A stretch of DNA of 63,718 nucleotides, the filler included, from Olpidium bornovanus S191 (lineage: Eukaryota > Fungi > Olpidiomycota), in the NCBI GenBank assembly GCA_017911155.1. It is 28 parts of 28 records of this genome, joined end to end, with 100 filler letters (N's around TTAATTAATTAA, not from the genome) between each part and the next. Parts side by side here need not be neighbours in the genome. Positions count along the whole stretch, not along the records: positions 40,584 to 43,601 come from JAEFCI010000277.1; 27 more parts are not named here. One strand, 5' to 3'. The notes beneath the pieces are model-generated. The model ran no database searches, was not told the origin of the DNA, and saw only the letters and a program-made list of their open reading frames with translations. Shown piece after piece: positions 5,584 through 43,922 of this stretch; the first letter of the stretch is position 1, and every line of letters begins with the position of its first letter. The position numbers were made by a program, and so were the translations under genes.

Positions 5584-6378
5584 ATGCTGCGGAGCCTCTC
5601 GCGCGTCCGCCCCCGCGCCCCCGCCAGCCTCGTCTTTCGGTGCCCCCCCGCGTCTCGCGCCGCCCCCGCGCCCCCGGCGCAGCTCTGCCGATCGCCAGTC
5701 CCTCCCCCGCCGTCCGACCCCGCCGCCGGGCCGCGTGTTCCGAACGCCCTCCTCGCCCGGGCGCCCGCCCCGGCCTGGCGCCGACGCGCGGTCCTGCCCG
5801 GCGCCCTCGGCTCCGCGGCCGCGGCCCGTGCGCTTCCCTGGACCGCCGCCGCCCCGGCGGCTCCGCGGGTTGCCCGCCGCTTCTCGTCGATGTCGTCCGG
5901 CGGCAAAGACTGCCAGCGGGACGTGCGGCAGGCGGGCCAGGACCGGCCCATACACACGCTGATCGAGGAGGATCTGGAGCTCGAAGGTTCGCGGCTGTTT
6001 TCGGCGATCCTTTCTGCTGTCGTTTGAAACAGCGGGCGGAGTGTGGAAGGGGGGAGGGGGGGGGGAAGGCGGGAGGGGAAATGGGGAGGAAAAGGGGGGG
6101 ATTGGAGGCCGGGCGACTGGCCTGATCCGTCTGTTCCCTTTCTCAGAGCTCGACCTCAACCTGTACCGCTCGCGCCGCTTGTGGCTTCCGGTCGGCGCTC
6201 GAGGCGTGTTTGGTACGCAAGGCACTGCGGATGCGCGTCTTGCCGTGACGCGCCACATGCGGGACTTCCCAATCCTTCCCGCCTCACCAGAAACGTTGCA
6301 CTTCGTCTAGGCGGCCAAGTGGTCGGGCAGGCGCTTGCGGCAGCGATCAAGACAGTGCCGGCTCAATACCGCGTGCAC
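5584..6378 (+). CDS. TES1: Acyl-CoA thioesterase II (ACOT8/Tes1/TesB family), 5' part
   Basis: Exons 5584-5986, 6147-6212 and 6311-6378 splice to ..LIEEDLELEELDLNLYRSRRLWLPVGARGVFGGQVVGQALAAAIKTVPAQYRVH. Contains the RGVFGGQVVGQAL signature. Confidence 0.9.
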
Positions 6379-40330: not shown

Positions 40331-40597
40331 CCTGCCGGCTTCTGAGCCGTCGTTGGTAATAACTGTTTGAGTTTTGTGAATTTCGCCGGGTGGGGCGTTT
40401 ATTATACAGAGGAAGATTTACGCGTTATAACGGGAACACAACATTATGGGGTTCCGACCAGACCGGTAACGAGACAGGTAGGANNNNNNNNNNNNNNNNN
40501 NNNNNNNNNNNNNNNNNNNNNNNNNNNTTAATTAATTAANNNNNNNNNNNNNNNNNNNNNNNNNNNNNNNNNNNNNNNNNNNNCCCCCGGCCGACAG

Positions 40598-41527
40598 CGG
40601 TCGTATCCTTTTTTTTTTATTTTTGCCACGCTTCCCAGCCCGGCAATCGCGCGCCCGCGCTCGCTTGTTTTGGGATTGTTCCGCTGCCGGCCGGGGCGCG
40701 TCTCCGGTTCTTGACTCGCGAATTTCGTTTCGCTTTCCCTTTCCTTTTGGCTCCCTTTGCCCCCCGTTGTGTCGACGCGCCGCTGGTAGACGTCCTCGGT
40801 ACGTGTTTCTTTTTAGGCGCGCGCGCGCCGGCGCCGCTCCGCCCCGAAGCCTGCGGGCGGCGACTTCGCGTCCCCGTGGGGCGCTCTCCCGTTTGGGCGG
40901 CGAACGGCCGCATCTCGATCCTTGGCGCGTCCGGATGCTAACCGCCCGGACCTTTGCAGTCATATCGCGCCGCGAGGTCAAGAGATTCGGCGACCTGACG
41001 CCGGAGGAGGTCGGTGATGTGTTTCGCAGCGCGCAGCTGATCAGCCGGGTGGTGGAGAAAGAGTATTCGTGTGAGTCTTTGACGATGGCCATCCAGGTAA
41101 TGCGGTCACAAGGCAAAGCGCCGTGCTCTCTGCAATTTCATGGACGTCGTTTCGTAACTCACCGGACGTTCGTTTTTCTTTTCGATAAGGACGGCCCCGC
41201 CGCAGGTCAGACTGTGCCGCATTTCCACGTCCATGTTATACCGAGGCGGTTCGGTGACTGGGCAAACAACGTGAGGGGAGGGGAGGGGAGGGGCCGCTCA
41301 GACGACGCAGCTCGTCACCGCGCGTTTTTAAGATCTTCCCTCGTCGCGGCCACCCTTCCAAATATTCGGTGGCGGATGGCCATTCCAAAAAGGATGATAT
41401 CTACGTAGAGCTGGACAGGACGAAACGTATGGGCGTGGACAACGACGAGCGCGTGCCGCGGAGTGAGGCAGATATGGCCGCTGAAGCCGCCAAGCTGCGG
41501 ACGTACTTCCCTGATTGGCAACTCTGA
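40598..41527 (+). CDS. HNT2: Fhit/Hnt2 dinucleoside triphosphate hydrolase, 5' end missing
   Basis: [47 protein letters not shown] (HIT motif)..DDIY..RSEADMAAEAAKLR. Exons 40598-40602, 40790-40798, 40960-41096 and onward. Confidence 0.93.
40603..40789 (+). other. Putative U12-type (minor spliceosome) GT-AG intron
   Basis: 5' site GTATCCTTT matches the RTATCCTTT consensus. Removing it gives in-frame GGT C|AC GTC (G-H-V). The branch point is uncertain. Confidence 0.6.
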
Positions 41528-42105
41528 TGACCGCACGGGGAATTCGCTCGGTCAGACGCTCGACGGCGCTTCCGGAGAGGGCGGAGGCCACCCTAACGAT
41601 AATAACGCGGACTCGGAGTTTGTCAAAAAGCCTGCCATCGCAACGCTCAACGATCGCACCCTTTGCGAATGAAGATAGATTAAATCACGAGATAACAACC
41701 TGCGGGACGGAGGAACAGTCAACTATATTATTTACAAGCGGAGTCGCCCGCGCAGCGCAGGGTCATTTCGATCCTTCTGAAAGGATATGACTGCCATTTT
41801 ATTTCTCCTTCCGGGTTGTAACGCGAACGGCGATAGAAATCGTTACGTCCACGGTAGGCAGCAGTGGAAGGAAGCATTTCTATCCCACGGACGCCTGCCA
41901 GGGCGCAAACGCCCGCGGAAACCGTTGCGGCTTCCAGTTTCTGGAATTAACCACAAGCGATACCGGAAAGGAGGACCAACATGAACCCCGCCCAGCTCCA
42001 TAGCTCGCGGATTTAGTCCTAGACTAGGCGAATCGGATCATGTTCTTGGAAAATGCGGTAGAACCACGTTGGATCGGCGACAAGCGACAGTTTTGTCCCA
42101 CGGCG

Positions 42106-43540
42106 TCATCTCCGCTTTGCTGGCAACTGCTCTGGGCGTGTCGAATCCCGCTTCTTCCACATGCCTCGGATTTCCGGTTCCGCCTTGACGAGCTGGGAGT
42201 ACGCCAGCATGAGGAAGTTGGTGCGAAGCGGAAAAGTTATACAGCGCGCAGGTCCAAACACGAACCCAAGGGGGGGAAAGACCGCAACGAGGAGACCAGG
42301 ACGGAACTCGGGAACACCGTTGTACCTCCTCAGACTCCACCCCGTCCCGGATGCTCTCCATGATCTTCTCTACTATCGTGAAGTAGTTCGGATCAAGCTT
42401 GTCTTCTCGAAAGCGCATAAATACCCATCCTCCCCGCTCTTCCGAATACGTGCACTCCGCAATCCGGCCGTCCAACTTCCCGTCTGCATTCATTCTAACA
42501 GCGCGCCGAAGATGTTTCCCCCAAACGGCGCGAAAACAGGAAAAAAAAACGTGCGAAAGTCAGCAAAGTCCACCATGGCAGAAGGCTGGTCCCGATGCGC
42601 GGTACGCTCCGGGCAGTGGGGGGAAAACTTACCTTTGCCATTCCTCATCAGTCACCGCCATTTCTGCCCAGAAAATCTCCGACTTGCCCTTCCCCTGCAC
42701 GTAGAGCTCCAGTTTCTGCAGTTCCTGTGGTCGCGGCGAAGCGGCATTCCCCGGCTTCGGCAATTCTTGCGATCCTGGCGAATCGGCACTCCCTGGTTTC
42801 TGTAGTTCTTGCGGTCCTGGCGAATCAGCACTACCCGCTTCTAACGGTTCTTGTGGTCGCGGTGAAGCAGCACTCTTCGACTCTTCGGCGTCAACGCTGC
42901 TTTCTTGATGCGCCGCGTCAGCTCCACTGGAACTCACAGGTGCTTCGTCATTATTGTCGCCAGGGGGTTTCGGCTCATCGGCCTCGGTTTCTGAGGCCAT
43001 CGAATCGAACCCAAAATCAAATTCTTCAAATTCCGTTTTGACAAGCCGATCGTAGTCATTCGGCCGCCTACTTTCCTTGTGGCCCGCCGCCCATTCCCTG
43101 TCGAGGGCTGACAAGTCGGTCTTCGTCTTCTTTTTTTCCACCTCGCCGGGATCGTCGTGTTGGCCATCGGCAACGTCGCCTCTGCTACGCTTCCGCGACT
43201 TGGGCGCTGCTTGTTGTCGCCCCTTCCCCAATGCTTCCCGTACAACGCGCACCCGAAAATCAACACTATTATCTGATGGTGGTTTCCACTTGAGCCTTTG
43301 GTTTTGCACCCCGGGTGAGAAGGCGCGCTCAGTAATTAAGAAGCTACTGGCCGATACGGAAAAGGCGAAAAGGCTCCGGAAGCGATAACGGGCCCTCACA
43401 TGGTATCGGTACTTCCCACGACGTAGGGCGCAAAAATCTCTGTGAAGATCAACCCGTCATTACCGTGCTTGAGGTTGGGTATATCCACGTTGAAGACCCT
43501 ACTGATGCCGTACGCAACCTGTTGCTCTTTCATCTCGATG
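42106..43540 (-). CDS. CEG1: mRNA capping enzyme guanylyltransferase, 3' part
   Basis: LKHGNDGLIFT (motif IV)..PYVVG..MLKWKPPSDNSVDF (motif V)..LDGRIAEC..WVFMRFREDK..N..VEKIMESI (motif VI). Confidence 0.93.
42707..42876 (-). repeat. Four in-frame 42-bp (14-aa) repeats inside CEG1
   Basis: SAASPRPQEPLEAG SADSPGPQELQKPG SADSPGSQELPKPG NAASPRPQELQKLE. Confidence 0.9.
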
Positions 43541-43922
43541 CTGAAAAAAAAAACACAAGCCTCTGTCAATTTCATGAACATAGCGGCGGAGTTAGCACAG
43601 GNNNNNNNNNNNNNNNNNNNNNNNNNNNNNNNNNNNNNNNNNNNNTTAATTAATTAANNNNNNNNNNNNNNNNNNNNNNNNNNNNNNNNNNNNNNNNNNN
43701 NCATGCTTGGCGGCGTCTCCGTCTCGGAGATGACCGCGAAGACGAAAAAAAAAATACTGCGCGCGCGAGAGCGCGAGGGCGGGAGTGCGGGAGCGCGAGC
43801 GGGCGGGAATGCCCGTGTGTGCGTGTTTCGCGTGAGTGCACGCGCGGGGCGCGTTTCCCCGCCGCGTCCGGGCAAAAGGCGCACGCTCCAGTGAGAGAAA
43901 AAGAACGGGTAGCGGGGAAGAG

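Follow-up and report, generated by a model that had tools for sequence, protein, structure and literature searches.

The window analyzed here, a joined stretch of 63,718 nucleotides (nt) from Olpidium bornovanus S191 (Olpidiomycota), includes at positions 40584-43601 one whole contig of 3018 bp (JAEFCI010000277.1) of the metagenome-assembled genome of this fungus, whose source was non-axenic zoospores (PMC7865070). The + strand of this contig carries a Fhit/Hnt2 gene of the HIT family, and we consider, with a probability of about 0.78, that its intron at 40603-40789 is a genuine U12-type intron of the GT-AG subtype, inherited from an ancestral FHIT minor intron. Other survivors of this ancestor would be present in human and mouse FHIT, in Selaginella (as an AT-AC intron) and in glomeromycete, entomophthoralean-grade and neocallimastigomycete fungi. 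A minor-type intron had not previously been noted in Olpidiomycota but is predicted by their phylogenetic placement, and the FHIT minor-intron lineage itself was already catalogued.

The intron is 187 nt long, lies in phase 1 between the Gly and His codons of the GHVLV motif (hereafter the G|H intron) and starts with the 5' splice site GTATCCTTT (40603-40611), which agrees with the U12 consensus at 9/9 positions, is the same as the donor of the human and mouse FHIT minor intron and represents the sole + strand GTATCC within the contig. Against the U1-type consensus CAG|GTAAGT it matches at only 3/9 positions, with no G at +5 or -1, and is the poorest U1 fit on the contig, where the six other introns (donors GTACGT, GTAATG, GTGAGG, GTACAA, GTAAGT and GTGAGG) match at 5-8/9. 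A first inspection of the sequence alone (the original prediction) had already singled out this donor as different from the others of the window; the scores bear this out, and the donor is used in RNA. Judged from its sequence, the host gene can be assigned to the Fhit/Hnt2 branch of the HIT superfamily: the product matches Pfam HIT (E = 7.5e-14), harbors the HxHxH motif in the form HFHVHV and is 48-54% identical to fungal Fhit proteins, one of its fungal orthologs matching the solved FHIT structures.

Assembled contigs of four public runs, each from a different study, were placed on the contig sequence, and use of the junction was observed in RNA contigs of independent studies. A spliced contig of 2783 nt from run X4 starts with CGGTCACGTCCTC directly 5' of 40959/40960, and a contig of 1029 nt from X1 starts with ACGTCCTC at the same point, indicating that the junctions 40602|40790 and 40798|40960 are both used. 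The intron therefore has GT..AG termini in RNA, with its 3' splice site AG at 40788-40789, and the splice 40602|40790 reads GGT C|AC GTC CTC G, translating to G-H-V-L-V; the proposed phase-1 junction is thus found in RNA contigs that carry CGGTC|ACGTCCTCG|exon 3. The junction 40798|40960 leads into 17 residues colinear with fungal Fhit proteins, for example that of Benniella.

These contigs also delimit two micro-exons on the + strand. The first, CGGTC (40598-40602), is conserved in fungal orthologs and encodes the third base of a Thr codon, the whole Gly codon and the first base of His. The second, ACGTCCTCG (40790-40798), is recovered in the unmatched ends of RNA contigs and in a joint 40797->40959, and encodes the remaining His bases, then Val and Leu, and the first base of a further Val codon. 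In a further X4 contig of 156 nt, TGGTGAACCTGAAGCCGATAACGAC (25 letters unmatched on the contig) is joined to 40598 and the sequence is then colinear on to 40728. Together with CGGTC, this indicates that exon 1 ends in ..VNLKPITT and that the 14 nt at 40584-40597 are the tail of another intron, of U2 type and in phase 2 inside the codon before Gly, with its acceptor AG at 40596-40597; exon 1 and the remainder of this intron fall outside the contig edge. The original prediction needs amending on two points here. It had taken the 19 nt 5' of the donor as a single exon, whereas only CGGTC is exonic and 40584-40597 (..gacAG) is intronic by X4 RNA, and it had given the motif as PGHVLV, whereas the RNA-derived end of exon 1 gives TGHVLV (..VNLKPITT-GHVLV). 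An exonic reading of the 19 nt (PPADSG) aligned poorly with the KPILPG of the relatives and was rejected in view of the RNA acceptor at 40597. The 156-nt contig represents a molecule from which the upstream intron had been spliced out with the GTATCC intron retained. Similarly, an X1 contig of 247 nt follows 40584-40797 without a break and continues at 40959, with the GTATCC intron retained and the downstream intron removed.

The orthologous position was compared in 12 annotated Fhit orthologs, for which the genomic loci were obtained and each protein was mapped exactly onto the DNA; odd mapper paths (mis-annotated Geosiphon, Anaeromyces and Rhizoclosmatium) were settled by eye. The G|H codon position and phase 1 are common to Olpidium and the aligned orthologous proteins, which establishes orthology in position and phase with catalogued or canonical U12 introns. 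In three fungi the G|H intron has a U12-type donor and a branch box: Rhizophagus clarus (donor GTATCCTTT, box TCTTAAT, 23 nt to the 3' end), Basidiobolus ranarum (GTATCCTC, CCTTAAC, 20 nt) and Anaeromyces robustus (GTATCCTTT, TCTTAAC, 18 nt). The fourth case is Selaginella moellendorffii, where the intron starts with ATATCCTTT, ends in AC, has the box TCCTTGAT at 37 nt and is preceded by a 3-nt micro-exon. The donor is GTAAGTTCCTTT in Gigaspora, GTAACCTTTT in Geosiphon, GTATGT in Powellomyces, GTAGGT in Benniella and GTAAGT in Rhizopus microsporus, all five without a box. It is GTTCGT in the basidiomycete Botryobasidium, which has lost the upstream intron and lay outside the box scan. Allomyces has lost the G|H intron and kept the upstream one, and Rhizoclosmatium has lost the G|H intron. 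Among the 13 species, the FHIT G|H intron is therefore U12-type in five, U2-type at the same site in six and lost in two, and a YCTTRAY box accompanies every [A/G]TATCC donor (five introns, Olpidium counted), whereas the five U2-donor introns that were scanned have none.

Such a distribution would be expected from one ancestral U12-type intron that was kept, converted or lost, type conversion via donor mutation and switching between the AT-AC and GT-AG subtypes being described processes (PMC2831892). Since the same position and phase go with [A/G]TATCC and YCTTRAY in three fungi and in Selaginella, the G|H minor intron is, on this comparative reading, at least opisthokont-ancestral, and it is probably older than opisthokonts. 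The opisthokont ancestry put forward in the original prediction is accordingly upheld by the same-site U12-type introns of Rhizophagus, Basidiobolus, Anaeromyces and Selaginella (AT-AC).

The arrangement upstream of the intron is also shared. An acceptor AG, a 5-nt NGGNC exon and then the phase-1 G|H intron occur in nine fungi, which represent at least five phyla or subphyla; besides Olpidium, the micro-exon has been seen in Rhizophagus, Basidiobolus, Anaeromyces, Gigaspora, Geosiphon, Powellomyces, Benniella and Rhizopus. The intron that precedes it is U2-type and in phase 2. In the fetched loci the micro-exon lies at 2269-2273 (L002), 2186-2190 (L003), 1190-1194 (L004), 1166-1170 (L005), 1197-1201 (L006), 1285-1289 (L007), 654-658 (L010) and about 5951-5955 (L001, Geosiphon). 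In Selaginella it is the 3-nt GTC (L008, 825-827), the upstream intron having moved by 2 nt to phase 1. No further convincing U12-type intron was found in the flanks of all fetched loci. A close relative of Olpidium was sought in metagenome contigs, which yielded only distant HIT genes with at most 41% identity over the full match.

The Geosiphon pyriformis locus deserves a separate remark. Its 270-aa protein (P0013, L001 3001-6591) is chimeric, the first 143 residues coming from unrelated upstream sequence, and the annotation omits the micro-exon AGGCC as well as the genuine first exon of Fhit, which lies at about 5727-5826 (MTTFAFGPHTIRASEVFF..NLKPIVP), with the result that the deposited protein has ..DVLV in place of ..PGHVLV. 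The donor GTAACCTTTT of this species is one base off the U12 consensus.

In mammals, Olthof et al. (2019, PMC6717393; supplementary files 2 and 3) include both human FHIT and mouse Fhit among the minor-intron genes. The human entry gives chr3:60014153-60536859 (522,707 nt), with the 5' splice site GACGTATCCTTT and the branch site TGGGCCTTAACA, and the mouse entry gives 551,319 nt, GCCGTATCCTTT and TTGTCCTTAACC; the donors thus read GAC|GTATCCTTT (human) and GCC|GTATCCTTT (mouse), and the branch sites CCTTAAC (PMC6717393). The exonic bases GAC and GCC are compatible with GGA C and GGC C and share their GNC end with the fungal NGGNC micro-exon. In the protein alignment, the fungal G|H corresponds to G34|H35 of mammalian FHIT. 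The three exonic bases of the entries would in themselves also allow G6|Q7 and R42|P43, and G34|H35 is favored because the fungal and plant introns sit at that position. Exon 6 of FHIT, which we take to be 146 bp, would moreover span the distance to the conserved Q|D intron. We therefore favor phase 1 at Gly34|His35 for the catalogued human minor intron, as the original prediction had it; the catalogued GAC|GTATCCTTT and the alignment agree with that statement, the position itself being inferred. FHIT was not found named as a U12-type or minor-intron gene in the main texts searched, the listing being in supplementary tables.

The 3' half of the Olpidium intron is less typical. No TCCTTAAC-like box is present within 40 nt of the AG in 40603-40789, and the sole match to T[CT][CT]TT[AG]A[CT] in the intron is TTCTTGAC (40708-40715), with A40714 as the presumed bulged branch nucleotide; the box scan thus agrees with the caveat of the original prediction, which had placed the best candidate about 75 nt upstream of the AG. 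It is the only box of the intron able to pair with the conserved branch-recognition sequence of U12. Taking that sequence to be 3'-AGGAAUG-5' (a general one, not Olpidium's own), the pairs would presumably be U:A, U:G, C:G, U:A, U:A, G:U, a bulged A and C:G, and hence include two G:U wobbles. A degenerate box of this type arises by chance with P ~0.04 in this A-poor (6% A) intron (20,000 shuffles). We infer from these features that TTCTTGAC may serve as the branch site. Between box and acceptor lies a pyrimidine-rich, AG-free tract (40716-40787) with 72% C+T, compared with 65% 5' of the box, the intron being C+T rich throughout. Given this composition the absence of AG from the tract is not significant (P = 0.32). 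The acceptor is the first AG 3' of the box, and no AG or AC occurs 10-26 nt 3' of TTCTTGAC, hence there is no alternative acceptor there. The direct repeats in the tract (TTTCG x2 and CTTTCC x2) suggest that the spacer was expanded by slippage, and the 37-nt T-rich spacer of the Selaginella ortholog hints that the FHIT intron may tolerate a longer spacing. An 8-bp helix (40695-40702/40774-40781) that could draw box and AG together was discarded, being at chance level for GC-rich sequence; the folding of the whole intron is likewise no better than that of shuffles (z = -0.79).

From these elements a course of splicing can be proposed. U11 would recognize GTATCCTTT, U12 would pair with TTCTTGAC and bulge A40714 as the branch nucleotide, and after the first catalytic step the first AG 3' (40788-40789) would be taken as acceptor across the 72-nt pyrimidine-rich AG-free tract. 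With flanking exons of only 5 and 9 nt, recognition would have to be by intron definition. The three neighboring introns would probably be removed in succession, the U12-type intron tending to be among the last. That the minor spliceosome indeed removes the intron with a U12-paired branch about 75 nt from the acceptor, between exons of 5 and 9 nt, is a more tentative proposal than the U12-type identity of the intron, and we put it at slightly less than even odds.

Several observations weigh against a U12-type intron that is still spliced as such. The working branch-to-AG range in mammals is about 10-26 nt, and A40714 sits 75 nt before the last intron base, the distances in the U12-type orthologs (four in all) being 18, 20, 23 and 37 nt (the Olpidium distance is 75 or 76 nt depending on counting, the ortholog figures following the count that gives 76). 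The candidate branch site of the Olpidium intron is thus not close to the 3' splice site, a proximity that is a typical property of the kind used by classifiers and not proof of the acting spliceosome. Moreover, the tract between TTCTTGAC and AG resembles a polypyrimidine tract, and in U12 introns the branch site is described as near the 3' end and an obvious pyrimidine tract as usually absent (PMC1557818). In addition, a few U12-like introns persist in nematodes, which have no minor spliceosome, and are removed there by the major one (PMC1557818), so that a U12-like donor alone is no proof of minor splicing. Retention of the GTATCC intron, seen in contigs of two studies, speaks for the U12-type reading, but as anecdotal support: the depth of the retention contigs relative to the mRNA contig is roughly a quarter (17.2 vs 72.2 in X1, 3.5 vs 12.3 in X4), with contig depths being a poor measure of retention. 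No retention contigs of the introns 40799-40959, 41097-41189 and 41271-41392 were found in the runs placed. The - strand U2-type intron 42193-42325, with the weak donor GAG|GTACAA, is also retained in X1 (depth 24 vs about 65 spliced), although not in X4. Retention of the GTATCC intron fits slow minor-type splicing without being specific evidence for it.

These points could be accommodated if the intron were a vestigial or converting one, derived from a U12-type intron whose old donor was kept and which is now removed by the major spliceosome via a distant branch point and a long polypyrimidine tract; the minor spliceosome could have been lost, or the 3' half could no longer suit it. The 3' half is U2-like in this sense, with 75 AG-free nt of 72% pyrimidine, TTGAC is also compatible with the loose yUnAy branch consensus of U2 introns, conversion of the FHIT G|H intron is frequent in fungi (five or six of the sampled orthologs are converted), and the C. 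elegans U12-like introns judged to be U2-dependent provide a precedent (PMC1557818). However, the donor would be expected to have changed: known conversions involve a donor change, for example C to G at +5 (PMC2831892), as in all the converted orthologs, whereas here it is without G at +5 or -1 and its U1 match of 3/9 is the contig's worst. A perfect 9-mer together with a U12-complementary box is moreover unlikely to last without selection by U11/U12, and both neighboring groups of Olpidium retain minor splicing (PMC10639083). We therefore regard such a vestigial intron as unlikely. It is still less probable that the intron is U12-type with a degenerate true branch site near the AG, for example TGTGTCGAC with A40775 about 14-15 nt upstream, and that TTCTTGAC is a chance match. 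With A40775 the branch-to-AG distance would be a classical one and the chance of a TTCTTGAC-like box, although small (0.04), is not negligible, but TGTGTCGAC agrees with TTCCTTGAC at only 5/9 positions and has three mismatches in base-by-base pairing to the conserved U12 box, and clean YCTTRAY boxes are present in 4/4 U12-type orthologs.

A wrong gene model, in which GTATCCTTT would be a chance 9-mer in a larger intron or an exon, might be suspected from the end of the contig 19 nt upstream of the donor and from the deposited protein BJ554DRAFT_5625, which reads through the region. The exact joints and the exon 1 end ..VNLKPITT given by the RNA contigs refute it in practice, the 5-nt exon followed by the G|H intron is common to nine fungi, and the deposited protein includes translated introns, leaving this reading with almost no probability. 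The in-frame read-through of the intron 3' end (..FAPRCVDAPLVDVLV) was likewise dismissed as translation of pyrimidine-rich intron sequence.

A U12-type intron in Olpidium is consistent with what is known of fungi. Minor introns and minor small nuclear RNAs (snRNAs) have been reported for Rhizophagus (205 introns), Basidiobolus (249), Spizellomyces and Neocallimastigomycetes, whereas Dikarya have none (PMC10639083), in agreement with the statement of the original prediction that U12 introns occur only in some early-diverging fungi and not in Dikarya. As many early fungal lineages are now known to carry minor introns, and as the two groups next to Olpidium in the fungal phylogeny, chytrid-grade lineages and early fungi without flagella, both retain minor splicing (PMC10639083), the present case is less surprising. 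We found no report in the literature that pairs Olpidium with a minor intron, and Olpidium is not mentioned in PMC10639083. A working minor spliceosome in this fungus would be implied by the preferred reading. Rfam models gave no matches on the 3018-bp contig, a result that is uninformative on the minor snRNAs of the genome.

The remaining Fhit/Hnt2 coding region (40960-41527, + strand) is supported by the Pfam HIT match, the identity to fungal Fhit and spliced contigs in three runs. It is preceded by a U2-type intron of 161 nt (40799-40959, donor GTACGT, branch site GCTAAC at 40937-40942) that is used in RNA and for which none of the 12 orthologs examined has a counterpart at the same position; as a consequence, 14 nt of the Fhit coding sequence are broken by three introns. 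The exons that follow (40960-41096, 41190-41270 and 41393-41527, stop TGA 41525-41527) are separated by U2-type introns at 41097-41189 (GTAATG) and 41271-41392 (GTGAGG). In the last intron, the G-run repeat GTGAGGGGAGGGGAGGGGAGGGG (41271-41300), a potential G-quadruplex motif, comes after the donor, and 41264-41302 was skipped as a repeat in read placement. The deposited BJ554DRAFT_5625 (40623-41527 in the window), a 274-aa protein labeled 'partial' with a 100% match to the contig, is translated through the U12-type, 161-nt and 93-nt introns; these are open in one frame and its N-terminal half is therefore largely intron translation.

On the - strand of the contig lies the 3' half of a gene for an mRNA capping enzyme (PF01331 and PF03919). 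It includes an exon of 220 aa without a Pfam match (42700-42870 region), located between the nucleotidyltransferase and the C-terminal OB domains and containing an about threefold tandem proline-rich repeat (SADSPGPQELQKPG-like). The two genes are convergent, with stop codons about 510 nt apart (41528-42040), and single RNA contigs of X1 and of X4 span this whole interval, the X4 contig also spanning both genes. This suggests overlapping 3' untranslated regions, although a contig across two genes does not prove a single transcript. Also on the - strand, at 41780-41788 and downstream of the capping-enzyme stop codon, ATATCCTTT is another perfect minor-type donor motif; about 0.18 such 8-mers are expected in the contig by chance, and the RNA contigs are colinear across it with no splicing seen. 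Two positions differ between the assembly and RNA: 40743, inside the U12-type intron, has T for C in one run, and 42395, in a capping-enzyme exon and with no coverage by a DNA run, is A in the assembly and G in all three RNA-like runs. These could be strain differences or assembly errors.

With this intron, Olpidiomycota, the zoosporic lineage nearest to the non-flagellated fungi, joins the fungal groups with a minor-type intron. A FHIT minor intron shared by mammals, fungi and a land plant would make a convenient single-gene marker of the retention, conversion and loss of minor splicing in fungi. The displaced branch box and the micro-exons (5 and 9 nt) make unusual substrates for splicing. 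Introns of the Olpidium type would be under-scored by standard classifiers, whose search for the box reaches only about 55 nt from the 3' end, and gene predictors fail on the micro-exon structure, the deposited Olpidium and Geosiphon proteins both being wrong here. If the proposed branch site is correct, a spacing of about 75 nt would exceed what is regarded as the tolerated distance by a factor of three to six, and the rule of a short distance between branch and 3' splice site would not be universal in U12 splicing. Likewise, the conserved succession of a U2 intron, a micro-exon of 3-5 nt and a U12 intron, shared by fungi and a lycophyte, would offer a natural system for studying two spliceosomes that act side by side without exon definition.

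Among known systems, the U12-like introns that nematodes keep as vestiges (Sheth et al. 2006, PMC1557818) resemble the Olpidium intron in combining a U12-like donor with a U2-like 3' region, but nematodes are demonstrably without minor snRNAs whereas relatives of Olpidium possess them. Close counterparts are the introns of R. clarus, B. ranarum and A. robustus, which share with Olpidium the NGGNC micro-exon, the phase-1 G|H position, the GTATCC donor and the GT-AG ends. They have boxes of the type TCTTAAY/CCTTAAC and differ in being AT-rich, 94-103 nt long and with the box at 18-23 nt, whereas the Olpidium intron is GC-rich with its box at 76 nt by the same count; they also lack the extra intron that Olpidium carries 9 nt downstream. 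Selaginella is similar to Olpidium in position and phase, in the very short upstream micro-exon and in a longish T-rich spacer (37 nt), and differs in its AT-AC subtype, its 3-nt micro-exon and an upstream intron in phase 1 instead of 2. Finally, the mammalian FHIT intron as catalogued belongs to the same gene family and has an identical donor GTATCCTTT, GT-AG ends, a YCTTRAC-type box and a consistent codon position, but measures 522,707 nt in human and 551,319 nt in mouse against 187 nt in Olpidium. The upstream exon in human is presumably an ordinary first coding exon, so that the 5-nt micro-exon would have no equivalent there.

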